From the sequence record OR545507.1: 64,000 nt of DNA. The stretch is one strand, 5' to 3'. Each line of letters opens with the position of its first letter. Within the stretch, counting starts at the first letter, position 1. The notes beneath the pieces were generated by a model, which ran no database searches, was not told the DNA's origin, and was given only the letters and a program-made list of their open reading frames with translations. The position numbers and the translations under genes are program-made. Positions 17,182 to 35,382 of the stretch are shown here, piece by piece.

Positions 17182-17262
17182 AGATACACTCCTGCACCCA
17201 GTGGGCTAGTTTTTGTCTATGCGTATATAATAGCAAAGGGACTGACCGGAGTCAATCCCTTT
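17182..17262 (-). repeat. promoter-CCCANNGGGTGC element A (with terminator/promoter hairpin)
   Basis: GGGATTGAC-TCCG-GTCAGTCCC; TTGACT-N17-TATTAT; then GCCCACTGGGTGCAGGAGTGTATCT; no ORF. Confidence 0.8.
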
Positions 17263-17277
17263 TTTTATTCTTTTTTG

Positions 17278-17478
17278 TTAGATGATTCTCCAATCTTCTA
17301 CGATCATGGTAAGATAACGGACCATCGATTCAAGTGATTCGAATTCCCGATAGTCTGCCGCTCCACCAGCGGTACAAGTACAGCCGATTAAACCATTTTG
17401 TAATTCCTTAATCTGTACATCGATAAGGTTGGCTTTAGCTTCTTTCAGTACTTCAACCAGGGCGATAGCGATAGACAT
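17278..17478 (-). CDS. hypothetical early protein
   Basis: ORF behind promoter-stem-loop. Confidence 0.7.
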   Translation of the reverse strand: MSIAIALVEVLKEAKANLIDVQIKELQNGLIGCTCTAGGAADYREFESLESMVRYLTMIVEDWRII

Positions 17479-17567
17479 AATGTTTTACTCCAAACTATTG
17501 ACGGGAGAACTATTCCCCCGCTCTATGTAAAACATTATACATTACTGGTTAGTACTGTCAAATAGTT

Positions 17568-17825
17568 TTATGAAATATCTTCGATGTAGTCGGCCCATTT
17601 CATTTTTTCAGTACTGTCAATGGCTACCGGATTATTTGGATCAAACCATTCACCATTCCCGCAATACATACCCACGGCAACGGTTTTATATCCATCCTGT
17701 GCAGTACTCCACGACATAGCACGATAGATATGGCCTTTAACTGGTTGCAATACTGGTAATGTTTTATGGTCTTCTACGTAGGCCATAGCTTGAGGATTTA
17801 CCCGATATTGTGTGAACTGTTCCAT
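17568..17825 (-). CDS. hypothetical early protein
   Basis: ORF with own promoter and RBS. Confidence 0.7.
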   Translation of the reverse strand: MEQFTQYRVNPQAMAYVEDHKTLPVLQPVKGHIYRAMSWSTAQDGYKTVAVGMYCGNGEWFDPNNPVAIDSTEKMKWADYIEDIS

Positions 17826-17901
17826 TATGTTTCCCCTTGTAGTTAGTAAAGTTATTACATCAGTACTATCAAGCTATGTCAATAGTACTGAAATAAAACT
17901 T

Positions 17902-18126
17902 TTAGATTAGATTATTGATGCCGTTGATGGTAGACTCGCTTTCTTCTTTCTCCCATTGGCGGTAGTACTTCCATGCTTCATGATATGTGGCGATTAGTTC
18001 ATCTTTTTGATCCTGAGTACATGCCAGTACTGAATCACGGTGAGCGGTTTTATAGATAGAATCGAATGATTTCTTCTCTTCTGCCAGGTTAGCTACTTCC
18101 CGCATCAGTTCATCAAAGTTAGCCAT
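17902..18126 (-). CDS. hypothetical early protein
   Basis: ORF with GGAG RBS. Confidence 0.7.
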   Translation of the reverse strand: MANFDELMREVANLAEEKKSFDSIYKTAHRDSVLACTQDQKDELIATYHEAWKYYRQWEKEESESTINGINNLI

Positions 18127-18193
18127 TTTATTACTCCTTTTAGTGGGGGAGGATATCTCCCCCTATGCAAAACATTATACTTTGTTTTAGTTA

Positions 18194-18457
18194 TTATGCA
18201 AGTACTTTTTTCATATAAAGATTATATTCTACACCGCCGTAACCTTCTACGATGATATGTTTTGCGTTATCACGTTTGCACATAGTGAAACCGTTGTTGA
18301 TGTGTTCTGCATTTTCCAGGGCGACATCACCGATAGCGGCACATACGGCACTAATAACAGTATTCCGCAAAGTACTGGTATCATTAGCGGTCATAGTAGT
18401 TTGCAGTACTACGTTGTCGTATACGTGTGCATTGATAGTGATTTCGATAGTGTTCAT
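18194..18457 (-). CDS. hypothetical early protein
   Basis: ORF behind promoter-stem-loop. Confidence 0.7.
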   Translation of the reverse strand: MNTIEITINAHVYDNVVLQTTMTANDTSTLRNTVISAVCAAIGDVALENAEHINNGFTMCKRDNAKHIIVEGYGGVEYNLYMKKVLA

Positions 18458-18543
18458 GGTGTATCTCCTGGACTGGCGGGAGAACTATTCCCCCGCTCTA
18501 TGTAAAACATTATACGTTAATCTAACTACAATGCAAGTACTTT

Positions 18544-18735
18544 TTAAATTTTATTTCCGATATAGTCCGGTCTATTCTTTTCGGTCATACGCTTTGCTAA
18601 TGTTTGCATATGGCTTATTGCGTTTAATGTGTCTTCCTCCAGGGATGAATCAACATAATCAGGATCATTCTTCACCTTGCAATGATTATGATAGCGTAGT
18701 ACTGCCAGTACTTTTTTAACTTCTTCTACTGTCAT
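18544..18735 (-). CDS. hypothetical early protein
   Basis: ORF, ATGA overlap. Confidence 0.65.
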   Translation of the reverse strand: MTVEEVKKVLAVLRYHNHCKVKNDPDYVDSSLEEDTLNAISHMQTLAKRMTEKNRPDYIGNKI

Positions 18736-19004
18736 AATAAGTACCCCACTTCGTTAGCTTTCAGGTTAGTATCAATCATCAGTGGATTTTTGTAGTTCAC
18801 AAAACGATTAGTTTTCTCGATAGCGAATCCCATATAATCCAGCTTACTAACAGTACATTCATTCTTAAAAACTTCTTTCGCTGCATCGATGGCTGATTGC
18901 ATGGATAACCGACCATCTAAATTAATGTTTCCAAATGATCCACCAGCAGAAGTAGGATTACCGTTCATATCTTTAATGATCATAGTAGCGGAGTAGCTGG
19001 ACAT
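18732..19004 (-). CDS. hypothetical early protein
   Basis: ORF behind promoter-stem-loop. Confidence 0.7.
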   Translation of the reverse strand: MSSYSATMIIKDMNGNPTSAGGSFGNINLDGRLSMQSAIDAAKEVFKNECTVSKLDYMGFAIEKTNRFVNYKNPLMIDTNLKANEVGYLL

Positions 19005-19091
19005 AATTTTGTTTCCTTTTAGTATCGGGGAGAACTATTCTCCCCTTGATGTAAACTATTATACAGTACTGATATACTTTGTCAAATACTT

Positions 19092-19499
19092 TTATTCGCC
19101 CATATAGATTAAGTTATCATCGCCTACATAGGGATCGCAAACGTTGATTTCTTCGCAGTACTTCGTGAATACATCGCCATAGTGACCTAAACCACGATCC
19201 CAAAAACCAGTTCCGTGACCTTCGCGGGTAAGGAACAGATCATGACCAGCTTGCTCATAACCGTAATCAATAAACATACCGCGAACTACTTCCAGATCAT
19301 TACCGTGTTTCTCAATGAAGCGAGAACATGCAATCACCGCCGCTTGACGTGCTTCATCAGATAACTCATAATCTTCCAGGTAATCGCCGTTATCATTATG
19401 TACAGTACTGAATTGCATAGCTTCAATGTAAGCTACAACCATTGCAGCATGATTTTTATCGTTAGTGATGTTCCGAGCGAGATTAGTAGTAGTAGACAT
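19092..19499 (-). CDS. conserved phage hypothetical protein (GHD-F-LTR-GHG-GFWDRG motif)
   Basis: AGHDLFLTREGHGTGFWDRG; motif recalled from other phage early proteins, function unknown. Confidence 0.75.
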   Translation of the reverse strand: MSTTTNLARNITNDKNHAAMVVAYIEAMQFSTVHNDNGDYLEDYELSDEARQAAVIACSRFIEKHGNDLEVVRGMFIDYGYEQAGHDLFLTREGHGTGFWDRGLGHYGDVFTKYCEEINVCDPYVGDDNLIYMGE

Positions 19500-19582
19500 G
19501 ATTTTATTCCTTATTGTATTGGGGAGAACTATTCTCCCCTTGATGTAAACTATTATACAGTACTGATATACTTTGTCAATAC

Positions 19583-19804
19583 TTAATTACGTTTAAAATG
19601 ATATGTGCCTTTATCATCCTGTACGCCCCACACTGATTTACCATCAACACCAGTGAAACCGGATTGTAATTCAATATGGAAACCATTATTATCAACTACA
19701 AAAACTTTTTTATTTTCATCCCGATAACATTGATATTCTGAATCAACATTAAAGGCCGCATCATTCAGAAGATTGGAAGCGTAAATGCAAGTCATTGTAG
19801 TCAT
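19583..19804 (-). CDS. hypothetical early protein
   Basis: start MTTMTC after promoter-stem-loop. Confidence 0.7.
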   Translation of the reverse strand: MTTMTCIYASNLLNDAAFNVDSEYQCYRDENKKVFVVDNNGFHIELQSGFTGVDGKSVWGVQDDKGTYHFKRN

Positions 19805-19928
19805 GATTTTATTCCTTATTACCAGGGAGAACCATTTCCCCCTCTCTATGTAAAACATTATACTTGATTCTAAGTACAATGCAAGTACTTTTTATCAAAT
19901 AGTTTTCAGTACTGAATACTTATATAAT

Positions 19929-20012
19929 AGATACACTTCCGCACCCTATGGGTCAGTGAGTTATCTCTCAATGAATATATAATAGCAAAGGGACTGACCG
20001 GAGTCAATCCCT
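19929..20012 (-). repeat. promoter-CCCANNGGGTGC element B
   Basis: same terminator/promoter; GAG-AGATAA-CTC hairpin; ACCCATAGGGTGCGGAAGTGTATCT. Confidence 0.8.
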
Positions 20013-20025
20013 TTTTTAATCTTTT

Positions 20026-20610
20026 TTATCGTGTTACCTTACTTGCTTCTACATCACGCTTTTTATAGTACTGATTCCAGATATTGCGGGTTAAACCGTA
20101 ATCAAGTACTTTAATAAGGCCATTACGATCCTGGCCGATATTCTGTTTTCTGATATCTCTTATCGTTAGTGTTGATAATGTATCATCAACGTGTTGTAGT
20201 GCATCAGCAAAGCGGTGCTGGCGTTCAATGGCATTACGTTTAATATTGTACTTTAATTCATTGCACGCGTTTACGTGCTTTACACTGCCTTTACTTGCAG
20301 TACTCAACCGATCCATAACGATAAACATATTATCAGGATCGCATAAATGCATATGCACCTTTGCAAAGTACTGTTTCAATTGAGGGCGGTCATAATCTAA
20401 AAAATTCCATACCTTACATTCAGTTTCATTTTGTTCTACACCCGCATCACAATTCGCGACCTTGATCACTAACCGATCATTTAAAGCGAATACAATACGG
20501 GAAGAACCCGCACCGATGATCTCCAGACCAGCTAACCGACAAGCTGAAAGGATCTCTTTGTTGGTTTCCATTTCTGACAGGGTACGGATGAATTTAGTAT
20601 AATTACGCAT
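20026..20610 (-). CDS. minimal protein-kinase-like protein
   Basis: IGAGSSRIVF (Gly loop), LVIKVA, QNETE, RDIRKQN, VLDYG. Confidence 0.75.
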   Translation of the reverse strand: MRNYTKFIRTLSEMETNKEILSACRLAGLEIIGAGSSRIVFALNDRLVIKVANCDAGVEQNETECKVWNFLDYDRPQLKQYFAKVHMHLCDPDNMFIVMDRLSTASKGSVKHVNACNELKYNIKRNAIERQHRFADALQHVDDTLSTLTIRDIRKQNIGQDRNGLIKVLDYGLTRNIWNQYYKKRDVEASKVTR

Positions 20611-20641
20611 TGCATGTTCTCCTTGAGTTAATGAAACTATC

Positions 20642-20884
20642 TTACAGTACTTTACTATCAATGGCAACTACTTTTTTAACATTAACGGCGTGGATCACCT
20701 CCTTAGTGTTTTTAGTACTGAATACTTTCGCCGCCCCATTCACGACCGTGATACGATAGCGACCATTAACATCAACCATATTAATAAAGTCCGGCGTGCT
20801 GAATGGTGTTGTTTTACATTTGAGTACTGTTAACAATTCCACCAGCGATGTAGTTTCTTTGATACGTTTTTCTAAAGTAATCAT
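20642..20884 (-). CDS. hypothetical early protein
   Basis: ORF with TTGACA-N17-TACTAT promoter. Confidence 0.7.
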   Translation of the reverse strand: MITLEKRIKETTSLVELLTVLKCKTTPFSTPDFINMVDVNGRYRITVVNGAAKVFSTKNTKEVIHAVNVKKVVAIDSKVL

Positions 20885-20942
20885 TTTGTTTTTCCCCGTG
20901 TTGGTATGTACATATAGTACTAAAACATTTGAGTACTGTCAA

Positions 20943-21161
20943 TTAGATAATATTATATTTCTTAAAATAAAATGCGTCCTGTGTTGGTTGATACTCAATG
21001 CCATTGCCGTTATTGACTTCAACTAATAAACCTTTGTCAATAAGTTTTTTAATAGTACGATACCCTTGTTGAAAATTGGTAAAATGTGAATCATTACGAA
21101 AGGTATAACCGTGCTTAACTGCTTCATCAATAGTTTTCTTTTCGATTTTAGATAATTTCAT
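20943..21161 (-). CDS. hypothetical early protein
   Basis: start MKLSKIE; promoter duplicated from 20885 region. Confidence 0.7.
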   Translation of the reverse strand: MKLSKIEKKTIDEAVKHGYTFRNDSHFTNFQQGYRTIKKLIDKGLLVEVNNGNGIEYQPTQDAFYFKKYNII

Positions 21162-21214
21162 TTTGTTTCTCCCGTGTTGGTATATGTACATAGTACTAAA
21201 ACATTTGAGTACTG

Positions 21215-21469
21215 TCAACGTGATATTAGTTTTATTTTCTTATTATATTGTTGGTGTTCATATAGGTTTATCTTTCCTGTGTTCTCAATTACTATTCTGT
21301 TGTTAGTGTCCACATCGATTACACGCAGTTTCCCGTTGCTTAACTTCCTTGGTAATAGGTTACCATTAATAAACTCATTAGCAAGCTGTACGGCCTTTGT
21401 GATGATTCTCTTCGGTGCTTTATAGTGTACCCGTAAGATGTTATCTTTATATAGTTGAACCTTAATCAT
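21215..21469 (-). CDS. hypothetical early protein
   Basis: ORF. Confidence 0.65.
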   Translation of the reverse strand: MIKVQLYKDNILRVHYKAPKRIITKAVQLANEFINGNLLPRKLSNGKLRVIDVDTNNRIVIENTGKINLYEHQQYNKKIKLISR

Positions 21470-21486
21470 TTTGTTTGTCCTATAAA

Positions 21487-21509
21487 AAAGGCGGGAACTG
21501 ATCCCGCCG
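21487..21509 (-). terminator. rho-independent terminator
   Basis: GGCGGGA-N-TCCCGCC followed by TTTTT on minus strand. Confidence 0.65.
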
Positions 21510-21530
21510 TGTTGTTAGTACTGCAAGTTA

Positions 21531-21935
21531 TTAGATAACCTGGCGGCGTTTACTGAATACTGTTACACGATTACCCTTACGGTCGTGTCGGATCTCTTTC
21601 TGGTTGCGAATCAGTTCACTTGGACGCTTAAGGTTTGCCAGGTGATCCGCGTGAGTCCATGCGGTGTGGTTTACCTGTACTTTGATATCAGAATCAGCGA
21701 TAAACTCATCTTGTGCGTCAAGTATTGCCGCCAGCATATCCGCTCGTTTTAGTTCTGCTGCTGTCAGTACTGGCTCAGGTGAATTCACAATATCAGAGAT
21801 TTCTTTGAACTGTACGGCCCAGCGTTGACCTTTCGGTGCATCTTTGCCCATGTCTTTAAATGCTGCTCCTTCCTCGCGTGCAACAATACGGGCAGCTTCA
21901 CGGGTAGCGTAGAATTTAGTAATCATGGTATACAT
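21531..21935 (-). CDS. hypothetical early protein (paralogue of 33713)
   Basis: FYATREAARIVAR..FKDMG..RWA..DRKGNRVTV. Confidence 0.75.
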   Translation of the reverse strand: MYTMITKFYATREAARIVAREEGAAFKDMGKDAPKGQRWAVQFKEISDIVNSPEPVLTAAELKRADMLAAILDAQDEFIADSDIKVQVNHTAWTHADHLANLKRPSELIRNQKEIRHDRKGNRVTVFSKRRQVI

Positions 21936-22021
21936 CCTATTAGTTGAGATAGTACTACAAGTTAGAGTCTATTATAAAGTACTATCTGGGCAATGTCAAA
22001 TAGTACTTTAAATGGATTCTA

Positions 22022-22345
22022 TTACATGTCTTTCTTACGTTTTACATCGTAGTATCGAACTGTAATTTCTTTGTTGATCTCTTCCTCGATGCGGTGAATA
22101 ACTTTTTCTTTCGGGTTGAAACCTATAACGGTTTCTTTAATGATCTCCAAGCCCGTGTATTCGCCTTGTGTACCGTAACCGTATGTAAAGGTTTCGTGTC
22201 CCAGGTCTTCCCAGCGGTCGCCAATTAACGCTGACACGTAGCAAGAGTGGTAAGTATTGCCGTTCCGATCAGTCCAGCGATTAACTTTAATGTCAAAGGA
22301 GGTTACAATTTTCAGTTCTACTTTCTGGGTAAGGATCATAGCCAT
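22022..22345 (-). CDS. hypothetical early protein (paralogue of 28140)
   Basis: RWTDRNGNTYHSC..FTYGY..VKRKKDM. Confidence 0.75.
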   Translation of the reverse strand: MAMILTQKVELKIVTSFDIKVNRWTDRNGNTYHSCYVSALIGDRWEDLGHETFTYGYGTQGEYTGLEIIKETVIGFNPKEKVIHRIEEEINKEITVRYYDVKRKKDM

Positions 22346-22432
22346 TTTTATTTCTCTCTCTTTGTTAGGAGGGGAACCATTCCCCTCGCTTGATGTAAAC
22401 TATTATACAGTACTAAGATACTTTGTCAATAC

Positions 22433-22615
22433 TTATTTTTTGGAAAGTTTACGCATTAATTCTACGCTTTCTTGTGAACGTTTTGCTACCTGGCAAGCTG
22501 TATGGGCAGTAAACATTTTTGTATAGTCTGACGCTTTGCCACCAAACCGAGCGGCACGTTCACGGGCACTTGGAACTAATACTATTTCTTTCTTGCAGAT
22601 AGTGCACTTAGCCAT
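22433..22615 (-). CDS. small Cys/His-containing protein
   Basis: CxxC...HxxC; start MAKC. Confidence 0.7.
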   Translation of the reverse strand: MAKCTICKKEIVLVPSARERAARFGGKASDYTKMFTAHTACQVAKRSQESVELMRKLSKK

Positions 22616-22703
22616 TTTTATTTCTCTCTCTTTGTTAGGAGGGGAACCGTTTCCCCTCACTTGATGTAAACTATTATACAGTACTAAGATACTTTATCAA
22701 TAC

Positions 22704-22979
22704 TTAAGTATTGTAAATGTCGTGAATAGTGATAAAGTTTTTACGACCGTAAACCTGCAAATCAATATCAATGTAGTGCTTATCTAGTACATCCTCGACG
22801 CTTAACGCGGTGTCGTGGATATCTTCGTAGAATTGAGGATCTACAATCTTGCTTAAGTCATCCGGCGTTAACTTATCGTTAAGCCATTGAACCGCCTGGA
22901 TATCTGCTTCACGTTTCCAGTCTTCCAGGTTAGTAGTCAGTACTTGTTCGATTTCGTTAGCTGTCAGTAGAATCCGCAT
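22704..22979 (-). CDS. hypothetical early protein
   Basis: ORF with own promoter. Confidence 0.7.
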   Translation of the reverse strand: MRILLTANEIEQVLTTNLEDWKREADIQAVQWLNDKLTPDDLSKIVDPQFYEDIHDTALSVEDVLDKHYIDIDLQVYGRKNFITIHDIYNT

Positions 22980-23048
22980 TTTTATGTTTCCTTATCAGTG
23001 GTTGATGTAAGTATTATACTCGTTTACTTTCTATTGTCAAACTATTTT

Positions 23049-23126
23049 ATCAGGGGAGTTTTTCGTATGTCTTACTCCTGGACTACTTAACAGGGTTACT
23101 TATTTCGTTCCCCGTCCTGATGTAAA
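23049..23126 (-). ncRNA. candidate structured small RNA, copy 1
   Basis: consensus promoter, no ATG, near-identical copy at 33037, hairpins. Confidence 0.5.
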
Positions 23127-23202
23127 ACATTATACTTGATTCTAAGTACAATGCAAGTACTTTTTTAAAAATAGTTTTCAGTACTAGCCACCAGCAAACA
23201 AT

Positions 23203-23283
23203 AGATACATTTATGCACCCTGTGGGCTGATTTGTTTCTATGCGTATATAATAGCAAAGGGACTGACCGGAGTCAATCCCTTT
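23203..23283 (-). repeat. promoter-CCCANNGGGTGC element C
   Basis: same terminator/promoter; GCCCACAGGGTGCATAAATGTATCT. Confidence 0.8.
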
Positions 23284-23720
23284 TTCAAATATTTTTAAAC
23301 TTCTTTCGGGTTGCGATAGGTGATAGCGTTCGGGTACATTTGTTTAATGTTATTCCATGCCTGGTTAACATTATAACCACTTGAGCGAATCAGTTGGTTA
23401 CTACCGACACCTTGAAACACTACTTCGAATAAGAATTCTTTCATGCTTTCACCTCGCTATCTGCTTTACCTTTACGCCAGGACATTACTAATTGTTCGCG
23501 TTGCCATAAGTCGAGTGATACAAAAAGTTTTGCGGTATCACTTTTAGGATACTCGCCAGTAGTACCTAACCGATAAAACAGATCTTTCAGTACTGATAAT
23601 TCTACTTGAATCATTTTATTACTCCTGATTGCGTTAATACTTCTACTATTGCATGAATGATCATAAGTACAGCTAACACAATAATCATCGGATTCATTTG
23701 CATAAGCTGTACTCCTTATA

Positions 23721-23933
23721 TTAATCTTTCAGCCAATGATCTTGAATGAATTTTTCACCGTATCCCTGTTTCATGGATTCTAACAGGCGTTCGCGGTGAG
23801 CGGCGGCATATTGCTCAGTACTATGCGTTACGCCAGGCTGATAACGTGATACCCCATCCGGTCCGATGTATTGTACATCCCACGGTTTTTCGTTAGTATC
23901 AGACCATTTACGAACGATTAGTTGACCTTGCAT
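23721..23933 (-). CDS. hypothetical early protein
   Basis: ORF behind promoter-stem-loop. Confidence 0.7.
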   Translation of the reverse strand: MQGQLIVRKWSDTNEKPWDVQYIGPDGVSRYQPGVTHSTEQYAAAHRERLLESMKQGYGEKFIQDHWLKD

Positions 23934-24016
23934 TTTTCTTTCCTCTCAGTGGGGAGAATCATTTCTCCCCTTCATGTAACTTATTATACAGTACTAGATT
24001 ATCTTGTCAATAGTTT

Positions 24017-24340: not shown

Positions 24341-24367
24341 TTATTGTTATCCTCTATTAAATTAATA

Positions 24368-24562
24368 TTACAGTTTATGAATCAATTCTTTATCTAAGCG
24401 ATAGCGTACATTATTAATAGTAACGGCATTGTTTTTAATGCTACGCTGTACAGGTCCACCAGCAATAACAAATGTTGCTTTATTACCCCGAACAATGATA
24501 GCACTTCCAGGATTACCGAAATCATCTTGTACTAAAATACTTGATAAGTTTTCCATTTTCAT
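24368..24562 (-). CDS. hypothetical early protein
   Basis: ORF behind promoter-stem-loop. Confidence 0.7.
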   Translation of the reverse strand: MKMENLSSILVQDDFGNPGSAIIVRGNKATFVIAGGPVQRSIKNNAVTINNVRYRLDKELIHKL

Positions 24563-24637: not shown

Positions 24638-24895
24638 TTATCTCATAGATCTATGCCAACAATTACGCGGGGGACGTTTAAAAGTACTATCATGATCCTC
24701 CTGGCAAGTTATGCAGTACTTACATCCCTTAACAGCCTGGCGGCGATTCTCAGGGATTTTATCGCCACAGTCGAGGCAATGTATCAGTGATTCTATTTGT
24801 GCGTTAATTTGCTTTCTAGCGTGGTTTACGGCGGCCTGAATCACTGCGTTAATCTCGTCTTGTTCGGCCCCGTCTTTCGCGAATCCTACAGCCAT
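24638..24895 (-). CDS. TraR/DksA C4-type zinc finger protein (YbiI-like)
   Basis: MAVGFAKDGAEQDEI...CLDCGDKIPENRRQAVKGCKYCITCQE. Confidence 0.9.
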   Translation of the reverse strand: MAVGFAKDGAEQDEINAVIQAAVNHARKQINAQIESLIHCLDCGDKIPENRRQAVKGCKYCITCQEDHDSTFKRPPRNCWHRSMR

Positions 24896-26021: not shown

Positions 26022-26363
26022 TTATTCGAAATCTTCTGGACCGGACTGATAATCATCTTCACCGTATGCACTTTCTAACTTCTCGCCAGTGTGGTCATCA
26101 GTTAGTGAGTCATCCTCATAGTTCACGTCTACGCCAGTGATGTAAAACTGGCTATCGTCTGGATCATTGAAATTAATTTTCTGTATGTTTACAATAACTG
26201 TATTGATGCCCAGGACACCGCCATCAGCCGTTACAAAGTACTGATATTTTTCACAACCGCCTGAATTGAAACCGTAATTAATTTCGGCCCGACCATCATT
26301 TAAACGCAGTGCCTGAGCGATGATTTCATTTTCAAAGTTAGATTGAGCAATTGAGATAGTCAT
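26022..26363 (-). CDS. conserved acidic phage hypothetical protein
   Basis: YFVTADGGVL...VDVNYED...ESAYGE; motif recalled from other phages. Confidence 0.75.
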   Translation of the reverse strand: MTISIAQSNFENEIIAQALRLNDGRAEINYGFNSGGCEKYQYFVTADGGVLGINTVIVNIQKINFNDPDDSQFYITGVDVNYEDDSLTDDHTGEKLESAYGEDDYQSGPEDFE

Positions 26364-26485
26364 GATTTGTTTCCTTATTACCAGGGGAAACCGTTTCCCC
26401 TTTCGATGTAAAACATTATACGCTTATTGAGATAGTTTGCAAGTACTTTTTAAAAATAGTTTTCAGTACTCAAACATTATACAAT

Positions 26486-26572
26486 AGATACACTCCTGCA
26501 CCCTGTGGGCTAGTGAGCTATCTCTCAATGAATATATAATAGCAAAATGGCTGACCGAAGTCAACCACTTTT
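26486..26572 (-). repeat. promoter-CCCANNGGGTGC element D
   Basis: GTGGTTGAC-TTCG-GTCAGCCAT hairpin/promoter; GAG-AGATAG-CTC; GCCCACAGGGTGCAGGAGTGTATCT. Confidence 0.8.
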
Positions 26573-27460: not shown

Positions 27461-27465
27461 ATTAA

Positions 27466-28463: not shown

Positions 28464-28782
28464 TTTTGTATTCCTTAAATTAATATGTTGTCTTGATAAA
28501 ATCTATTATGCCAGTACTATCAAACTATGTCAATAGTACTGTGATAATATTTTTACTTACTTTTTGCTTTCTTTGCTGCTTCCACCTGGTCGGCCCATTC
28601 TTTACCCCATACTTGTAAATTATAATGGTACTGGCAAAGAGCAACGCCCCGCTTTAAACCCGTAATAGATTTCTGACCACATTGACAAGTTTTCATTTTA
28701 GTTTCCTTGTAGTGGGGAGAACCATTTCTCCCCTTGATGTAATGTATTATACTTTATTCGATTTACTTTGCAAGTACTTTTT

Positions 28783-29010
28783 TTAATTTAATTCATCCAG
28801 GCAAAGGATACGCTCAACGCCCAAATCAGTTAAACTAATCGACGGCACTTGATAGGTTTCAATGTATGCTACACTTGCCCACTGACCGAACTCATTAACG
28901 GCCCAGGTATTCATTGCATTTTGCAATTCCGCACCTTCCTTGTTGGTAATTACAGCAACAGTAGAAGAATTACCAGTAGTACCAGATACGCGAGTGATTA
29001 CGATAGCCAT
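28783..29010 (-). CDS. hypothetical early protein
   Basis: ORF with own promoter. Confidence 0.7.
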   Translation of the reverse strand: MAIVITRVSGTTGNSSTVAVITNKEGAELQNAMNTWAVNEFGQWASVAYIETYQVPSISLTDLGVERILCLDELN

Positions 29011-29445
29011 TTTTTAATTCCTATTCAGTAGTTGATGTATGTATTATGTCAGTACTTAAAACTATTGTCAAACTATTTTTTAAAGTTTATCAATGATTGA
29101 TGCCGTTTCATTGATAGTCTTGCCGTGTTTTGCACACGCGATAACTGCTTTAAATTCCTTTGATGACCAATCTTTCTTGCTGCATACTGACATTACTTGT
29201 AAAGTAAAACAATCCAGTTCATAAGTATTCATCTTTAAATCCTCAGTTAGTTAAGGTGTCTCGCCTTGATGTAATTAATTATACGCTAATCTCTTAATCG
29301 TGCAAGTACTTTTTATTACTTTTTGCAAAATACTTTAAACGCTCTCAATCGCATTCTAACGACCTTAACTCCACCAGCTAGGGCGATGTATCAGATAATC
29401 AGTTTAATGCGTTAGGCGGTGCTAGTGGACTGGAATACTATAGAC

Positions 29446-29488
29446 ACAAAAAAGCCCACTGTTTAAGGTGGGCTAGTGATTCAGTACT
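29446..29488 (-). terminator. terminator, 43-bp direct repeat copy 1
   Basis: AGCCCAC-CTTAAACA-GTGGGCT-TTTTT; identical copy at 30182. Confidence 0.75.
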
Positions 29489-29495
29489 TTAATTT

Positions 29496-29978
29496 TTATG
29501 CTTCAACTTTGCGATGAGCTTCGATCCATTCCTCGCGAGTCATACCGCTTTCTTTGATAGCGTCCAGTACTACCGCAATGCAGTTACCGCGTACAGGAAT
29601 CAAATGTTCTTCCCCGTTATCAAGTACTACCGCTACACGTTCCTGAATCCATTTTTTAGGCTTAGATTCCGGCTTATCTTCACCATACTTAACCGCCAGG
29701 GCTTTATGTGCCATTTCCACAACCACTTCCAGATCCAATCCAGACACTGCCGCCTGAATACTTTCAATTGTTGCTTGTAGTTCTGCTTCACGGGCTTTTT
29801 TCTGTTCTTCCAGTTCTGCTACCTTTTTGGCTTGCAGTTCTTTCGCAGTACTGTACGCAATGTTAAAATTGTTGCGTACCGCTTTCATGGTATCGCTATC
29901 CAGTTCAGCCAGGATTTCTGCCGCTACGTTAGTTTCATTTGCTACCAGTGCTTTGATGAATGATTTTACATTAGCCAT
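29496..29978 (-). CDS. H-NS/StpA-like protein (divergent)
   Basis: coiled-coil N-half; C-terminal VLDNGEEHLIPVRGNCIAVVLDAIKESGMTREEW aligns by eye with H-NS [34 protein letters not shown]. Confidence 0.55.
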   Translation of the reverse strand: MANVKSFIKALVANETNVAAEILAELDSDTMKAVRNNFNIAYSTAKELQAKKVAELEEQKKAREAELQATIESIQAAVSGLDLEVVVEMAHKALAVKYGEDKPESKPKKWIQERVAVVLDNGEEHLIPVRGNCIAVVLDAIKESGMTREEWIEAHRKVEA

Positions 29979-30181
29979 TTTATAAATCCTCAATTAAAGT
30001 TTAGTTTACGTTAGATAGTGTATCAAAGTTTTCTCGACGTGTCCAGTTTTTCGTTCGACTTACTGGCGGTCTACTTAGTGCTCCCCGTCTTGATGTAATA
30101 CATTCTACGCTTTTCTGTGGTAATGTCAACTACTTTTTTAAAACTATTTTTAAAGTATCTCAGTACTACGATACTACAAAA

Positions 30182-30224
30182 ACAAAAAAGCCCACTGTTT
30201 AAGGTGGGCTAGTGATTCAGTACT
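30182..30224 (-). terminator. terminator, 43-bp direct repeat copy 2
   Basis: identical to 29446-29488. Confidence 0.75.
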
Positions 30225-30227
30225 AGA

Positions 30228-30527
30228 TTATAAACAGTTAATTACTCCGGTGTGCGTTACTTTCTCAGTATCCATAACCGTGACCGATCCACGCTTAGTA
30301 CTGGCATCATAATAAATTGTGGTGCTACCGTTTTCGTCTTCTTCATGGAACGGGCCGTTTTTAAATGCTTCCGGCTGGATCTCTAAATCCTTTAATACAA
30401 TCTCGCCAGTTCTTTCATCGGTCATTGCAACAGTGCACTGAATGAATTTTTCATTACTTACATCTAATGACGCATTAACAGCGAAAGAGGAAACAGATAA
30501 AGCCAGGGCGATGATTGCAATTTTCAT
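30228..30527 (-). CDS. predicted exported protein
   Basis: Sec-type signal MKIAIIALALSVSSFAVNA. Confidence 0.7.
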   Translation of the reverse strand: MKIAIIALALSVSSFAVNASLDVSNEKFIQCTVAMTDERTGEIVLKDLEIQPEAFKNGPFHEEDENGSTTIYYDASTKRGSVTVMDTEKVTHTGVINCL

Positions 30528-30611
30528 TTGATTATCCTTAGTTACCAGGGGGAACCGCTCCCCCTTGCTATGTAAAATATTATACAGTACTAAAAACTAA
30601 TTGCAAGTACT

Positions 30612-30848
30612 TTATGATTTTTTATAAAACATTTCGGCAGTGATATTTTTACCCGTTGGCTGTACTTTATCCAGAATTTTTTGATGCCCTGGCCGTCCAA
30701 ATGAATATGATCCGTAAACCGTAAACCAGTAGTTACCCTCAGTGTTTACATGTACAGCACAATAGGGAACGCCCCGCGATTCATCACTAGTAAAGTGTGC
30801 TACCGTTCCCGTTACATTCGAAGTCGTTGATTTGATTTGTTCAAGCAT
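30612..30848 (-). CDS. hypothetical early protein
   Basis: ORF behind promoter-stem-loop. Confidence 0.7.
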   Translation of the reverse strand: MLEQIKSTTSNVTGTVAHFTSDESRGVPYCAVHVNTEGNYWFTVYGSYSFGRPGHQKILDKVQPTGKNITAEMFYKKS

Positions 30849-30955
30849 TTTCTTATTCCTTAGTTACCAGGGGAACCGCTCCCCTATGCAAAACATTATA
30901 CGCGTTTAAAAACTAATAGCAAGTATTTTAATAAAAAGTATTTGGAAAATAATTG

Positions 30956-31030
30956 TTGACAAGTGCATCCAGTACTGGCATAATTACTACATCAAGACGA
31001 AACAGTCACTAACCCACCGGGTGCATAGAT
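30956..31030 (+). repeat. promoter-CCCANNGGGTGC element F
   Basis: TTGACA-N17-CATAAT; GAC-GAAACA-GTC hairpin; ACCCACCGGGTGCA. Confidence 0.8.
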
Positions 31031-31062
31031 CCGTCTATTAAATGATTCAGTACTGAAAAAGT

Positions 31063-31090
31063 AACGGGGAGTTATTATCTCCCCGCGTTG
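31063..31090. terminator. hairpin between convergent transcripts
   Basis: CGGGGAG-TTATTAT-CTCCCCG. Confidence 0.65.
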
Positions 31091-31312
31091 TTATTTTGTA
31101 AGGTATAAACAGAAGTCACCTTTATTTGCTACGCCGCCAGTGTAACGCGATGAATAGTTAGAAATATCTTGTACTTCTGCTATTACCAGTGTATCATCAT
31201 TCATTTCGTCGCAGAAGCAAACGGCTGGATCTTTTACGCCGATATTGTCGGCATGTTCCCGCATAGATTTAACCAGTGCTTCCAGTTGAGAAAGAGTAGT
31301 GATATTAGCCAT
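31091..31312 (-). CDS. hypothetical early protein
   Basis: start MANITT after promoter-stem-loop. Confidence 0.7.
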   Translation of the reverse strand: MANITTLSQLEALVKSMREHADNIGVKDPAVCFCDEMNDDTLVIAEVQDISNYSSRYTGGVANKGDFCLYLTK

Positions 31313-31398
31313 TGTATTTTCCTCATTACCAGGGAGAACCATTTCTCCCCTCTATGTAAACTATTATACAGTACTGAAAACTAATTGCAAGTACTTTT

Positions 31399-31602
31399 TT
31401 AATTTAATTGCTTTAAAACATACTCAAAGACACCACGCACATCATTGATCATCGCCTGGCGGTTAGCAGGTAACGCATCAGGATCGCCACTATCCCAGGC
31501 ATTGATAAAACTCCCCAAATCATGATAGATTTTATTCTGTAAGCCGATTAACTGTAATTCTTTTTCTTCAAGCTCTTTGATGCGGTCGATTAAATCACTC
31601 AT
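31399..31602 (-). CDS. hypothetical early protein
   Basis: start MSDLIDR. Confidence 0.65.
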   Translation of the reverse strand: MSDLIDRIKELEEKELQLIGLQNKIYHDLGSFINAWDSGDPDALPANRQAMINDVRGVFEYVLKQLN

Positions 31603-31619
31603 TAGATAATCCTCAGTAC

Positions 31620-31904
31620 TTAACTGTAAGATCCGCAACGGTCGCAGTAGTGCCCGTCCTCGTCATCGTCAACGAATTGACCGACGAAATGATCTACTTT
31701 CGCTTTCAGGTTATTATAATCGTTTTCTACTTCATTTAAACGCTTCTGGTAGTATTCCAGTGCTTTAAGATATGCCGCATCAGCAGTTTTCTCCTGCATA
31801 GCTAAATTCATGCCACGCGTTTCATCGTACAGCCAAAAACCATCGGTGCACTGGCTAATAGATAATGACTTGCTTAGTACTGTATAGTTAATTACTTTAC
31901 CCAT
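31620..31904 (-). CDS. hypothetical early protein
   Basis: ORF; C-terminal CxxC. Confidence 0.7.
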   Translation of the reverse strand: MGKVINYTVLSKSLSISQCTDGFWLYDETRGMNLAMQEKTADAAYLKALEYYQKRLNEVENDYNNLKAKVDHFVGQFVDDDEDGHYCDRCGSYS

Positions 31905-31996
31905 TAGATAATCCTCAGTAAAGGCGGGAACTATTCCCCGCCTCGATATAAAGTATTATACGTTAATCTAACTACAATGCAAGTACTTTTTAAATT

Positions 31997-32263
31997 TTAT
32001 AATCCTTTTACTGCATCAGGTGCGACTACTCCATCAATGTATTGAACATCGTTTTCAACTTCACGGGCGGCATCATTCAGCAGATCAAAATTAAATTCCA
32101 TTTCTTCCAGATCATCGAAATCAGGCTCATAACCATTAATTGTTGAATAAGTCCAAGTACCTTTTTCATAAGTTACGACACTTACATCAGGGAAGAAATC
32201 TTGCACATGATCCATCGCATCCCGAACCAATTGATGTGCAGTTGTGATATTTAAAGTTTTCAT
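31997..32263 (-). CDS. acidic hypothetical early protein
   Basis: ORF behind promoter-stem-loop. Confidence 0.7.
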   Translation of the reverse strand: MKTLNITTAHQLVRDAMDHVQDFFPDVSVVTYEKGTWTYSTINGYEPDFDDLEEMEFNFDLLNDAAREVENDVQYIDGVVAPDAVKGL

Positions 32264-32356
32264 TTTGTTGCCCTTTTAGTGTGAGCGGGGAACCACTCCC
32301 CGCCTCGATGTAAAGTATTATACGCTTTTAAACTTAGTTTGCAAGTACTTTTTAAA

Positions 32357-32968
32357 TTAATATGCGATTGATTCTACTACGTCATCAATAACATTGAATT
32401 GATATTCGTTACCCTCAATCAGTGCCGTAATGTTTTCAGTAGTGAATTGATCCTCATATGCATTCTCTAAATCACGGTACAACTTGCGGGATAATTCACG
32501 AATAGTTTCAGTGAGTAGTTCCTCAAGCTCATTAACTAACGTTTCTTGTTTTGCGGTTAAATCAGTGTAAGCCGATTCAATGTACCCGCTTACAGTATTC
32601 TCATGCGAGTAGTGGGAGTGAGAACGCTTTACACTCATCGCCAAATCATCTTCATTCAGCAGGTGACGGATTGAGCGATACTTAGTTAATGCTCTTACCT
32701 TGCGTAAAAACTTCACTGCGTCAACGTGGTCAGTACTGATTGATGCACCGTCACCCTGGGACCAAAAACCACTGAATTGTATTTCAGCTTCATTAATGCC
32801 ATATTCCGGTAGTACTGTTTCTTTATAGTATTCAATTTCACTTTCAGAAAAATAATTGTCGTTTGAGTTTTTTTCACGTTCCCGAACCAGTTCGATAGCT
32901 GACGTTTTTTGTTCTGCGTTCAATTCAGAAAAATCCATAACGAAAGTAGTAGTAGTGATAGTTTTCAT
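32357..32968 (-). CDS. SGFWSQGDG-motif protein (family often labelled antitoxin-like in mobile elements)
   Basis: DFSELNAEQK...IQFSGFWSQGDGAS; family label recalled, not verified. Confidence 0.6.
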   Translation of the reverse strand: MKTITTTTFVMDFSELNAEQKTSAIELVREREKNSNDNYFSESEIEYYKETVLPEYGINEAEIQFSGFWSQGDGASISTDHVDAVKFLRKVRALTKYRSIRHLLNEDDLAMSVKRSHSHYSHENTVSGYIESAYTDLTAKQETLVNELEELLTETIRELSRKLYRDLENAYEDQFTTENITALIEGNEYQFNVIDDVVESIAY

Positions 32969-33036
32969 TTTGTAACCCTCATTCAGTAGTTGATGTAAGT
33001 ATTATACGCTTTTAAAAACATTTGTCAAACTATTTT

Positions 33037-33116
33037 ATCAGGGGAGTTTTTCGTGTGCCTTACTCCTGGGCTACTTAACGGGAAGTTACTTATTTCGTTC
33101 CCCGTCCTGATGTAAA
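33037..33116 (-). ncRNA. candidate structured small RNA, copy 2
   Basis: as 23049; stem variants keep pairing. Confidence 0.5.
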
Positions 33117-33191
33117 ACATTATACGCCTTTAAACATAGTTTGCAAGTACTTTTTAAAAATAGTTTTCAGTACTGAATATTTAAAAAAGTA

Positions 33192-33255
33192 TTGACAGCA
33201 TTATCAAGTACTGGCATAATATACCCCATGACAACAGCTAACCCACCGGGTGCAC
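33192..33255 (+). repeat. promoter-CCCANNGGGTGC element G
   Basis: TTGACA-N17-CATAAT; ACCCACCGGGTGCA; converges on E. Confidence 0.8.
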
Positions 33256-33286
33256 AATTGTAACTATACTAAACTACTTTTTCTAT

Positions 33287-33364
33287 AGATACACTCCCGC
33301 ACCCTATGGGCTACGGCTTATCTGCCAATGAATACATTATGCCAGTACTGACAAAATAAGTCAA
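33287..33364 (-). repeat. promoter-CCCANNGGGTGC element E
   Basis: TTGACT-N17-CATAAT; GGC-AGATAA-GCC; GCCCATAGGGTGCGGGAGTGTATCT. Confidence 0.8.
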
Positions 33365-33394
33365 TACCGGCAATTGTAAAGATTTGTAAACTGC

Positions 33395-33625
33395 TTATAC
33401 TGCAATCGCGTCCAGGCTATAATAATAATAAGTGCCGTATTGGTGTACTTTATTACCTTTTATTTCAGTACTGAATGAATCCGAACGGTTTGCATATGAT
33501 GTTAATTTAAAGTACTTTGATTTGCTGATACGTTGCCATACACCGCAGATCCGCTGTAAGTAAGTAGTTTTATTCGTGGTAGTATCTTTTACAGTTTTAA
33601 CTTCAGTCATATACATATTAGTCAT
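33395..33625 (-). CDS. hypothetical early protein
   Basis: ORF behind promoter-stem-loop. Confidence 0.7.
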   Translation of the reverse strand: MTNMYMTEVKTVKDTTTNKTTYLQRICGVWQRISKSKYFKLTSYANRSDSFSTEIKGNKVHQYGTYYYYSLDAIAV

Positions 33626-33712
33626 TTTTATTACTCCAGGTTATAGGCGGGAAGAGTTCCCGCTCTCGATGTAAAACATTATACGCCATTAAACATAGTT
33701 TGCAAGTACTTT

Positions 33713-33979
33713 TTATTCAAGTACTGCAATCTTTTTAGTACGGTACACGGTCACGCGGTTGCCCTTTCGGTCGAGCTTTATTTCTACCACTCGACGCGAT
33801 ACACTATCAGGACTTTTCAACGCCGCTAACCAGTACTGTAATGATCTGGCGGTACTACGCTTTATAATGGCCCAACGTTTACCACGTTCCGATTGTACGC
33901 CCATATCTTTAAACGTTGCCCCGTCCTGGCGTGCGGCGATCCGAGCTTGTTCACGCGTCGCAAAATACTTAATATTCAT
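33713..33979 (-). CDS. hypothetical early protein (paralogue of 21531)
   Basis: YFATREQARIAAR..FKDMG..RWA..DRKGNRVTV. Confidence 0.75.
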   Translation of the reverse strand: MNIKYFATREQARIAARQDGATFKDMGVQSERGKRWAIIKRSTARSLQYWLAALKSPDSVSRRVVEIKLDRKGNRVTVYRTKKIAVLE

Positions 33980-34064
33980 GCTGTTGCCCTTATCGTTGGT
34001 GTATGAATAAAACACTATTATAAAGTACTATCGCAAAAAATGATAGTACTTTAAATAAATTCTA

Positions 34065-34304
34065 TTACATTCCAACCATTGCAGCACGGATCGCAGTAGT
34101 GCTATATTTGAATCCGTCCGGCGTTTTATCTTGTCCAGTCTGTTCTAAAAATAACATCATATGACGGGCCGCATCATTACGATTAGTATTGGCGGCAATA
34201 AAGTCCTGGGCCAACCGGTATAATGATTCATCGTTATTAATCCAAAGGCTTACATTCCAATGAGTTTTGTTTTTGTGACCTAAGAACATTTTTGATTTAG
34301 CCAT
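34065..34304 (-). CDS. conserved phage hypothetical protein
   Basis: GHKNKTHWNVSLWINNDE...TPDG..YS...IRAAM; motif recalled from other phages. Confidence 0.75.
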   Translation of the reverse strand: MAKSKMFLGHKNKTHWNVSLWINNDESLYRLAQDFIAANTNRNDAARHMMLFLEQTGQDKTPDGFKYSTTAIRAAMVGM

Positions 34305-34397
34305 TTTTTTAATCCTCTTATATAGTGGGGAACTATTCCCCACCTGATGTAAAACATTATACGCTTTTAAACATAGTTTGCAAGTACTTTATTAAAC

Positions 34398-34760
34398 TTA
34401 TTCGTAAATTTTGCCACTGTCAGCCCATACCAGGAAACGAGGCATATTATCCCATGCATCTTGTTTTAAATTTAAACCGTGTAATACTTCTGTACTTTCC
34501 ATTCCTGGTACTGGTTTACTATACACCGCGAAATTTTCGCCCATATACTGATAAACCATCGTCAAATCACTGGCGATCATCTTATGGATCATCGCATCAA
34601 GCATCACGGTAGCGGCGTATTGTTCACGCTTAAGCGGCAACATTGTAATAAGTTCCCGATAAGCTGAAATGTGAATTTTTACCGTTTCAGCCGGAAGACC
34701 TTTCATCTCTTCACGGAAGTTGACCAGGTTAGAAATAATTTTATTGATTTGGGTCGCCAT
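34398..34760 (-). CDS. hypothetical early protein (first gene of the early run)
   Basis: start MATQINK after promoter-stem-loop. Confidence 0.7.
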   Translation of the reverse strand: MATQINKIISNLVNFREEMKGLPAETVKIHISAYRELITMLPLKREQYAATVMLDAMIHKMIASDLTMVYQYMGENFAVYSKPVPGMESTEVLHGLNLKQDAWDNMPRFLVWADSGKIYE

Positions 34761-35079
34761 CGTATTAATCTCTTTTAAAGTGTAGCGGGAAGTGTTCCCG
34801 CTCTCGATGTAAAACATTATACGCCTTTAAACATAGTTTGCAAGTACTTTCTACATGTACTTTTAAAATAGTTTTCTTTCTATATAGGGGAACTATCATT
34901 CAGTACTATTATTCAGTACTGAATCAACCAAATCACTACTACACCCCATAAAACGGCCTCAGACGCATTCTAACGCATTAATACACCTAAGCTATACATT
35001 TGCACCATTCCAATCATTCCAGGGCTTTACGGGCCGTTTAAACGCGTTAAATTATTTTCAATTATTTTGTTTTTAGCTA

Positions 35080-35167
35080 TTGACTCAGTACAGAAAAAGC
35101 GTATAATTACTACATAGACGCGAGAAAGCGGAAACCCCAGAGGGTGCGGAATTACGCCCAAAATTCA
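35080..35167 (+). repeat. promoter-CCCANNGGGTGC element H
   Basis: TTGACT-N16-TATAAT; CGC-GAGAAA-GCG; CCCCAGAGGGTGCGG. Confidence 0.8.
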
Positions 35168-35180
35168 AGATATAAAAAAA

Positions 35181-35262
35181 GGATACACTCCCGCACCCTA
35201 GCAGGTAAACGCACTTTCTCAGTACTGAAATATAGTACCATAGTCCGGCCCAGGATAGCAAG
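35181..35262 (-). repeat. promoter-GGGTGC element I (degenerate left arm)
   Basis: CTAGGGTGCGGGAGTGTATCC; TACTAT -10 upstream; converges on H. Confidence 0.7.
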
Positions 35263-35295
35263 CAAATTAATTAAAACTTTTTTGCTTCCAGGGTA

Positions 35296-35382
35296 TTGCT
35301 TTATTTTTTCAGTACTGTATAATAGTTCCATCAAGTCGAGAAAGACTCAAGCCCACCGGGTGCATAGTTACGCCCAAAATTC
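35296..35382 (+). repeat. promoter-CCCANNGGGTGC element J
   Basis: TTGCTT-N16-TATAAT; GTC-GAGAAA-GAC; GCCCACCGGGTGCA. Confidence 0.8.

Follow-up and report, generated by a model that had tools for sequence, protein, structure and literature searches.

What is the role of a short element that recurs ten times between genes in the initial 64 kb of the genome of Escherichia phage Sharanji (OR545507.1), each time behind a promoter of its own? Sharanji is an Asteriusvirus, a Rak2/PBECO4/121Q-like jumbo phage of 350 kb, and the whole 64,000-nucleotide stretch that we analyzed is referred to here as the window; its ORFs agree in position with the annotated Sharanji CDSs. An earlier note on this DNA had proposed that the copies specify a conserved short structured transcript or an extruded DNA hairpin, with replication primer, decoy RNA and protein-binding site as candidate roles. 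Our results describe a real, statistically solid and apparently undescribed family of structured RNA motifs that is specific to the direct terminal repeats (DTRs) of Rak2-like phages, and we consider it likely that a functional structured RNA is made from the promoters of the element.

The core of the element, CCCANNGGGTGC, has nine exact matches in the window compared to 0.04 expected from shuffles, five on the minus strand (17194, 19941, 23215, 26498 and 33299) and four on the plus strand (31013, 33242, 35136 and 35352). A covariance model was built from 16 copies and the window was searched with filters off. The model recovered the nine exact copies and the 3' part of a tenth at 35181 on the minus strand (16.2 bits, E 0.07; copy 9, with the copies numbered along the window) and nothing further, confirming the ten intergenic elements that the earlier note had located. 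The RGRAGTGTATCY continuation of the minus copies was also present. The left arm of copy 9, previously described as degenerate, is instead a compensated variant (CCU-GCU-AGG-GUGC) in which the loop-closing C-G pair is changed to U-A and one additional G is present. Over the whole 350,079-bp genome the model returned the same ten copies only; a further core match, obtained by regular expression at 286.6 kb, belongs to a palindromic bidirectional terminator (GCACCCAATGGGTGC) with neither a promoter nor a covariance-model match and was rejected as a member. All ten copies lie in the 20,668-bp DTR at 15778-36445. These boundaries follow from the G17 record, which carries the physical ends, because its coordinates equal the window coordinates minus 15777 and its initial 20,668 bp are found again at the record end, and from the Sharanji paper, which reported a DTR of 20,668 bp by PhageTerm. 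The repeat makes up 5.9% of the genome and the chance of finding 10/10 copies inside it is 5e-13. With ten copies per repeat, each packaged genome carries 20.

We extended the search by scanning IMG/VR and the JGI/ENA metagenomes for the pattern and then applying the covariance model, which yielded 150 aligned hits, 124 of them distinct. Members were found only on jumbo-phage-like contigs (~345-378 kb) or on metagenome fragments bearing several copies; 16-mer matches on non-jumbo viral contigs and most metagenome matches had no covariance-model support and were dismissed as chance. With a 48-nt copy as query, INPHARED gave 65 records, all of them Rak2-like phages of 310-386 kb, from eight host genera (Escherichia, Klebsiella, Salmonella, Erwinia, Serratia, Cronobacter, Pectobacterium and Yersinia), and a Rak2-like genome carries about 7-13 copies. 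Where termini are annotated (Muenster, CBB and fENko-Kae01), the match lies under the terminal-repeat feature. None of 5,426 complete E. coli genomes contained an element match, and host mimicry was rejected. Rfam 15 gave nothing at gathering score for the 64-kb window, and at E ≤ 5 the region from 16.5 to 36.5 kb gave only three weak unrelated hits located elsewhere. ARAGORN found 0 tRNA or tmRNA genes in the window, and a tRNA or tmRNA identity was discarded. The Sharanji, fEgEco12 and CBB genome papers describe RpoD-like promoters or the repeat and do not mention the element. The opinion of the earlier note that this is not a described family was thus upheld, and the covariance-model, Rfam and phage-genome searches that it had suggested placed members in Rak2-like phages only, with no Rfam match. 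As a separate observation, 121Q (L010, 3645-3963) carries an extra 318-bp element cassette that is missing at the matching window site at ~24.9 kb. This cassette is most similar to the window copy at 30956 (85%), with its orientation relative to the genes reversed, evidence that the cassettes move.

Each copy had been credited with a consensus sigma70 promoter, and the signals were found at all ten. Eight window copies match the consensus at 10-11 of 12 positions, the copy at 35296 scores 10/12 by eye (TTGCTT-16-TATAAT), and the promoter of the copy at 35181 is weaker (TTGCTA-18-TACTAT, 8/12 by eye). Among related phages, 119 of 131 distinct copies scored at least 9/12 against the sigma70 consensus, compared to a shuffled mean of 6.35. 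The same 131 copies include 74 with a TG-extended -10 hexamer and 91 with a conserved CAT located 5 nt after the end of the -10 hexamer; transcription would probably start at the A of this CAT. The element thus has, at a fixed distance, the own promoter that is expected of a stand-alone small RNA gene, and the interval from the -10 hexamer to the core is variable (21-31 nt). A palindrome, CAGTACTG, also occurs in the promoter spacers, where it contributes the TG of the extended -10 hexamer, as well as at a distance of 8-17 nt past the 3' hairpin of the element described below. It is found 53 times in the window compared to 0.68 expected, densely between 16 and 36.5 kb, and 199 times genome-wide, at 1.6 per kb in the repeat and 0.5 per kb elsewhere (AGTACT occurs 903 times), and may be a site for a DNA-binding factor.

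The conserved module is ~50 nt long and consists, from its 5' end, of AU, a hairpin (P1), a YUR linker, a second hairpin (P2), and GC, after which come a loop rich in purines and the 3' strand (UGUAUCY or CCGUCY). Its conserved block reads CUAR-CCCAYAGGGUGC-RGARR-UGUAUCUAUA, and positional conservation ends ~26 nt past the core start. P1 is a 3-5 bp stem with an A-rich loop of 6-8 nt (AGAUAA, GAGAAA, GCGAAA or AGAACAA), and the loops vary within a single genome. At least 14 different stem sequences were found, and the six stems listed previously (GAG/CTC twice, GGC/GCC, GAC/GTC, CGC/GCG and GTC/GAC) were all present, reaching 4 bp in several copies. In about one quarter of the copies, the short forms, the A-rich run is kept and there is no real P1 stem. 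In an alignment of the 124 distinct sequences, which was fitted to the covariance model, the three inner pairs of P1 each showed 33-61 double-sided changes and were seldom unpaired. An alignment-free hairpin search exceeded all shuffles (4.04 compared to 3.25 ± 0.16), and RNAalifold, unaided, predicted both P1 and P2.

P2 (R-CCC-AYN-GGG-U) is nearly invariant and 98.6% paired, its outer pair being A-U in 64 and G.U in 53 of the 124 sequences. In four copies, each from a different phage (L019:7802, L028:6357, L006:4522 and window copy 9), U-A takes the place of the inner C-G pair, and the 3-nt loop is extended to 4 nt in some copies (UAGA, UAUA, UUUA and UCAA). Because of these compensatory changes and the variable loop length, the invariant block must be a hairpin, and a linear base-pairing seed was ruled out. 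Overlapping P2, the sequence GGGUGCR pairs with UGYRYCY around a purine-rich tetraloop to form the 3' hairpin, which is 89-90% paired, compared to 28-61% with a slid partner. Changes in this hairpin are commonly of the type G.U to G-C or U-A to U.G. Full compensations (C-G to U-A, C-G to G-C and G.U to A-U) are rare and produced U-A in L028:2058, G-C in L020:676 and L002:2777, and A-U in L035:359, where P2 is broken. G.U wobbles account for 46% of the pairs, and the 3' hairpin can therefore form only on the transcribed (sense) strand. In the UGUAUCY copies, about half of all copies, it is the minimum-free-energy fold (-4.4 to -8.6 kcal/mol, compared to -3.7 kcal/mol for P2), and, since they share GGGU, the two hairpins are mutually exclusive. 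Copies of the CCGUCY/CUGUCY subtype fold best as P2 with a small adjacent hairpin, and both can coexist. The strong covariation of P1 and the 3'-hairpin wobbles, which fit sense RNA only and mark it as the functional strand, agree with the proposal of a conserved short structured transcript whose pairing is kept across relatives, the transcript itself being predicted from sequence. The companion proposal of an extruded DNA hairpin appears unlikely, since the stems are 3-5 bp long and wobble-rich.

Conserved structure with covariation was accompanied by no consistent start codon or reading frame on inspection of the copies. A mini-ORF after the GGAG-like loop was rejected: NTG is present in many copies, but the spacing is too short, CCG, CTG or GCG stands there in others, and the frames on inspection stop after 3 codons or are unconserved. 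On inspection we rejected a pseudoknot in which the P1 loop (AGAUA) pairs with UAUCU of the 3' strand, as it suits AGAUAA loops only and no covariation accompanied the GAGAAA, GCGAAA and AGAACAA loops. We also rejected a CsrA-type GGA-loop sponge, with GGA in the loop of just ~2/3 of the copies.

The module was followed by one of three recurring 3' contexts: an intrinsic terminator, a convergent twin, or a second sigma70 promoter with a same-strand gene. In the terminator context, a canonical intrinsic terminator lies 21-28 nt further on and would give an RNA of ~100 nt (e.g., window 30956-31085). In the convergent context, the anti-core of the twin stands at a fixed 33, 44 or 51 nt (e.g., window 33192/33364 and 35080/35261). 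The third context was found at the window copies at 17.2, 19.9, 23.2 and 26.5 kb, all on the minus strand, where a second sigma70 promoter ~45-110 nt downstream is followed by a same-strand gene, with no intrinsic terminator between. The earlier statement that none of the copies leads into an ORF held for the four plus copies, as no gene of the terminal repeat lies on the plus strand, and failed for these four minus copies, which precede the genes starting at 17031, 19804, 22979 and 26363. Of the copies that end in a terminator, those facing an antisense gene outnumber the others 17:3, and of those with a promoter next to them, the ones that lie ahead of a sense gene do so 34:2 (Fisher p = 1.7e-9). 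Since the 3' context tracks orientation, the 5' module appears to be an autonomous unit with read-through blocked only where it would be antisense, and for the latter reason we rank a stand-alone RNA above a constitutive antitermination leader. Among 121 contexts, 36 had a convergent twin and the remainder, beyond those terminated, continued into a promoter or other sequence. Between some convergent pairs with a 44/51-nt spacer (L002 8050-8136, L005 1248-1334, L018 and L023 6060-6139) we observed a Fur-box-like palindrome, AATGATAATCATT, that is missing from the convergent pairs of the window.

The individual window copies follow these patterns. Copy 1 (17179-17255, minus) is a short form without a real P1 stem, with its element at 17221-17179 and its core at 17205-17194 (36.4 bits). 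Its TG-extended promoter (TTGACT-17-TATTAT, 17255-17227) lies within a terminator-like hairpin (17262-17235), and downstream are a Chi site (17147-17140), a promoter (17113-17085) and a gene (17031-16699). Copy 2 (19926-20007, minus; promoter 20007-19979, core 19952-19941; 61.6 bits) has P1 UGAG-AGAUAA-CUCA and the 3' hairpin GGGUGCG-GAAG-UGUAUCU, and is followed by the second promoter and the gene start at 19804. Copy 3 (23200-23276, minus; promoter 23276-23248, core 23226-23215; 36.3 bits) is another short form, with a Chi site (23195-23188) immediately 3' and then more promoters and the gene start at 22979. Copy 4 (26483-26564, minus; promoter 26564-26536, core 26509-26498; 57.8 bits) has P1 UGAG-AGAUAG-CUCA, with the second promoter at 26442-26415 and the gene start at 26363. 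Copy 5 (30956-31085, plus; promoter 30956-30984, core 31013-31024; 52.9 bits) is antisense to genes, has P1 GAC-GAAACA-GUC, and ends in a bidirectional intrinsic terminator (31065-31085), giving a predicted RNA of ~95 nt. Copy 6 (33192-33268, plus; promoter 33192-33220, core 33242-33253; 31.9 bits), a short form, is convergent with copy 7 (33284-33364, minus; promoter 33364-33336, P1 UGGC-AGAUAA-GCCG, core 33310-33299; 49.6 bits), whose anti-core lies 33 nt beyond the copy 6 3' hairpin; read-through transcripts of this pair fold as a long hairpin (-39.7 kcal/mol, z -6). Copy 8 (35080-35162, plus; promoter 35080-35107, core 35136-35147; 45.9 bits), with P1 CGC-GAGAAA-GCG and the 3' hairpin GGGUG/CGCCC, is convergent with copy 9. 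The variant copy 9 (35173-35261, minus), read directly from the sequence, has its promoter-like TTGCTA-18-TACTAT at 35261-35232, P1 ACU-GAGAA-AGU at 35223-35213, P2 CCU-GCU-AGG at 35205-35197, and the 3' hairpin AGGGUGCG-GGAG-UGUAUCCU at 35199-35180 followed by U7; this end is terminator-like and the predicted RNA is ~55 nt. Copy 10 (35296-35378, plus; promoter 35296-35323, core 35352-35363; 48.9 bits) has P1 AGUC-GAGAAA-GACU, and a downstream promoter (35421-35449) is directed into a repeat array with an 8-bp period. A repeat, TACGCCCAAAATYC, occurs four times (35152, 35368, 35676 and 35702), two of these occurrences supplying the 3' strand in the 3' hairpin of an element and two being solitary, and related YCCAAAATTCAGTACTG runs follow elements in CBB and GAP32.

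We propose that transcription from a strong sigma70 promoter of its own would place the ~50-nt module at the 5' end of a very abundant immediate-early small RNA, made at the start of infection from the 20 promoters of each packaged genome. The invariant P2 mini-hairpin would serve as the recognition site of a single conserved partner, a protein of the host or the phage that is thereby sequestered or recruited, and the 3' end would be set by what lies downstream: an intrinsic terminator, the element's own 3' hairpin and U-tract, a convergent twin, or read-through to the next promoter. Among the proposed roles, a decoy or protein-binding RNA appears to suit the anatomy best, and we give an autonomous protein-binding (sequestering or recruiting) small RNA slightly less than an even chance. 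Several points weigh against this proposal. A canonical terminator was found in just about a quarter of copies (~21 of 121 contexts within ~120 nt), and many copies would be the 5' part of longer transcripts. Single-copy folds were not better than shuffled outside the convergent pairs (z -0.7 to -2.2), P2 is just 4 bp (about -3.7 kcal/mol), and the 3' hairpin is heterogeneous among copies. Ten mostly basic repeat-encoded proteins contained no RNA-binding domain, and among the repeat ORFs we saw no arginine-rich peptide resembling N. No RNA-seq or other expression data for a Rak2-like phage were found in the library searched, and transcription, size and abundance are predictions from sequence signals.

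Some known RNA families share part of this anatomy. Qrr1-5 and CsrB/RsmZ are multi-copy small RNA families or protein sponges and, like the element, have paralogous genes with their own promoters and one invariant motif in a variable RNA; a structured repeated motif suggests protein binding. They differ in that the sequences are unrelated and that the element has one motif per RNA instead of many, lacks a terminator in many copies, is phage-encoded and is confined to the DTR. In Pseudomonas phage PA5oct, a distant jumbo-clade relative, RNA-seq revealed two highly expressed non-coding RNAs in the long terminal repeat, ncRNA001 and ncRNA002 (236 and 451 nt), at 2-5% of phage reads (PMC7318152). 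The first 40 kb of PA5oct contained no core of the CCCANNGGGTGC type, and homology to these RNAs was rejected. The promoter-early stem-loop cassettes (PeSLs) of T4-type phages (PMC2839356, PMC4122927) are likewise many near-identical strong sigma70 promoter modules with stem-loops, located between tiny uncharacterised genes in a plastic early region, and their cassettes vary between close relatives. The element has the strong sigma70-like early promoter and AT-rich upstream sequence of a PeSL. A 12-bp hairpin with a UCCG/UUCG loop (AAAGGGATTGAC-TCCG-GTCAGTCCCTTT) spans the -35 hexamer in four of the ten window copies (17235-17262, 19987-20014, 23256-23283 and 26544-26571) and is missing from the other six; it resembles a composite terminator-promoter of the PeSL type, its terminator activity being putative. 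However, the PeSL stem-loop surrounds the promoter and acts as a terminator, and the PeSL cassette ends in a Shine-Dalgarno sequence and start codon, whereas the conserved part here would be transcribed, 50 nt long and gene-less, with an invariant core and a covarying hairpin, and leads on to a terminator, a convergent twin or another promoter. Among foreign copies, L023:12601 alone had a start codon immediately 3' of the element.

We weighed these results against the alternative of a leader that works in cis on the RNA polymerase transcribing it, as a promoter-proximal module for pausing, attenuation or antitermination, similar to lambda nut, HK022 put, BglG-type antiterminator sites or his-type pause hairpins, and judged it possible but rather unlikely. 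P2 might then be the pause or anti-terminator hairpin and the 3' hairpin the terminator or attenuator, with a factor bound to P1/P2 deciding between them, a scheme that we hold to be doubtful to the same extent. The predicted position of the module, always at the 5' end of early-promoter transcripts in a terminator-dense region, is consistent with such a leader, as is the sharing of GGGU by P2 and the 3' hairpin, which exclude each other in about half of the copies and both have compensatory support. A U-run directly follows the 3' hairpin in copy 9 and several foreign copies, but a U-tract is missing at this site in most copies, and the CCGUCY subtype lets both hairpins coexist. The position table shows a U-G/C-Y to R step 10 nt past the P2 base with an invariant G ten nt upstream, which seems to resemble the elemental pause consensus and the spacing of his-type hairpins. 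P1 is boxB-sized, a small hairpin with a purine-rich loop, and like lambda nut or HK022 put the element would be a short structured RNA just past early promoters. In lambda-type nut sites boxB has a GNRA-like purine pentaloop bound by the arginine-rich N protein; P1 is a 3-5 bp stem with loops of 6-8 nt. The repeat ORFs showed no N-like peptide, and the conserved block has no boxA-like run (CGCUCUUA / UGCUCUUUAACAA). HK022 put, likened here by description only, comprises two adjacent stem-loops of ~70 nt that confer terminator resistance in cis. Ten copies are present here, several of them terminated at once in a way that protects opposite-strand genes, and the immediate canonical terminator of antisense-facing copies (17:3) would be senseless for constitutive antitermination; the downstream genes have their own promoters.

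R-loop or primer RNAs that start replication or recombination in the DTR, by the logic of T4 ori(uvsY) and ColE1 RNA II, seem improbable. In favor of them, these phages are related to the T4-type phages, a T4-like replisome is described for CBB (CBB paper), and Sharanji is annotated with RNase HI and RecA. The combination of a promoter, an untranslated transcript and AT-rich downstream DNA with a T4-like replisome and the phage's own RNase H recalls T4 and ColE1 origins. The plus copies at 35.1-35.4 kb and the promoter at 35421 point into an iteron-like array (35545-35672) within a 1.9-kb non-coding stretch, and properly oriented Chi sites are enriched in the repeat, two of them immediately 3' of copies. 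Ten origins per 20 kb, scattered mostly between small genes, would nevertheless be unparsimonious. The R-loop primers of T4 ori(uvsY)/ori(34) and ColE1 RNA II need a promoter and an unwinding element, at which a persistent RNA-DNA hybrid is processed into a primer, and dispense with an invariant mini-hairpin. As an origin signal we rejected the switch in GC skew near 36 kb, which tracks gene orientation: the positive skew at 38-55 kb is due to a plus-strand block at 40.8-54.9 kb, a tandem array (40799-54854) of about twelve ORFs, mostly ~380-440 aa, that are apparent paralogues. Of similarly low probability is a feature of the DNA itself, either an operator or protein site after a promoter class or a PeSL-like cassette homogenised by recombination, with a functionless RNA. 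Such an explanation might account for the almost invariant 12-bp core, as in protein sites, for a DTR rich in repeated promoter-terminator modules with four terminator-like hairpins over the -35 as in PeSLs, and for the 121Q cassette that is missing at its matching window site and closest to a reversed window copy elsewhere. It is opposed by P1 pairing maintained across at least 14 stem sequences, and by wobbles at the P2 outer pair (53/124) and in 46% of 3'-hairpin pairs, which become C.A mismatches on the other strand. Orientation is also invariably coupled to the promoter, the -10-to-core distance of 21-31 nt means that there is no fixed phasing with the promoter, and gene conversion would homogenise flanks, yet conservation is limited to a 30-nt block across eight host genera.

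The repeat that carries the elements has a GC content of 0.38-0.41, compared to 0.30-0.35 outside, and contains ~55 very small ORFs on the minus strand, the majority behind a consensus sigma70 promoter of their own, along with numerous terminators. Pfam matches among the minus-strand proteins include a ParE-like toxin domain (21215-21469, E 5e-11) and a DksA/TraR C4 zinc finger (24638-24895, E 1e-11); a protein at 20026-20610 had a weak protein-kinase match below the Pfam gathering score. Chi (GCTGGTGG) occurs 13 times in the window compared to 0.58 expected, and ten of these sites are in the DTR (0.48 per kb compared to 0.058 per kb elsewhere). Nine of the ten have the minus-strand orientation, in which they are active towards RecBCD that enters at the left end, with the first 1.4 kb inside, and the sole plus-strand site (35853) lies 0.6 kb from the right end of the repeat, an arrangement that would fit protection of both physical genome ends. 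The plus-strand site is part of an inverted Chi pair at 35841-35860 (CCACCAGC-acaa-GCTGGTGG) that forms a hairpin and is annotated as a terminator in G17, and Chi was also found within the promoter spacers of elements in other phages. The iteron-like array comprises ~12 units with an 8-bp period (TCTAGCCG, TTTAGCCG, TCCAAACG and others) in the 1.9-kb non-coding right end of the DTR, downstream of the promoter at 35421 and two plus-strand elements, and may serve as an origin, a packaging site or an injection-stop-like region.

Jumbo phages of the Rak2-like group are often considered for therapy against E. coli, Klebsiella, Salmonella and plant pathogens, and the annotation of their 20-kb terminal repeats so far consists of nothing but rows of hypothetical proteins. 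A conserved RNA motif that recurs there in multiple copies, each behind a promoter of its own, would constitute a new Rfam-type family, and ~2 kb of the repeat, unannotated or sometimes under spurious ORFs, would be structured regulatory RNA that is probably among the most abundant early transcripts. A bolder suggestion, which we regard as tentative and on balance unlikely, is a new riboregulator, a two-state RNA that alternates between P2 and the 3' hairpin, is made from ~20 strong promoters in the first minutes, and traps a conserved host factor or reprogrammes its own polymerase. If functional, the alternative pairing would make the element an unusually small natural RNA switch; if the two-state riboregulator is true, the terminal repeat of all Rak2-like jumbo phages would harbor an RNA-based host-takeover device, and the trapped factor might be, for example, a defence or RNA-metabolism protein common to Enterobacterales. 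The element would also offer a handle on how Rak2-like phages take over the cell.

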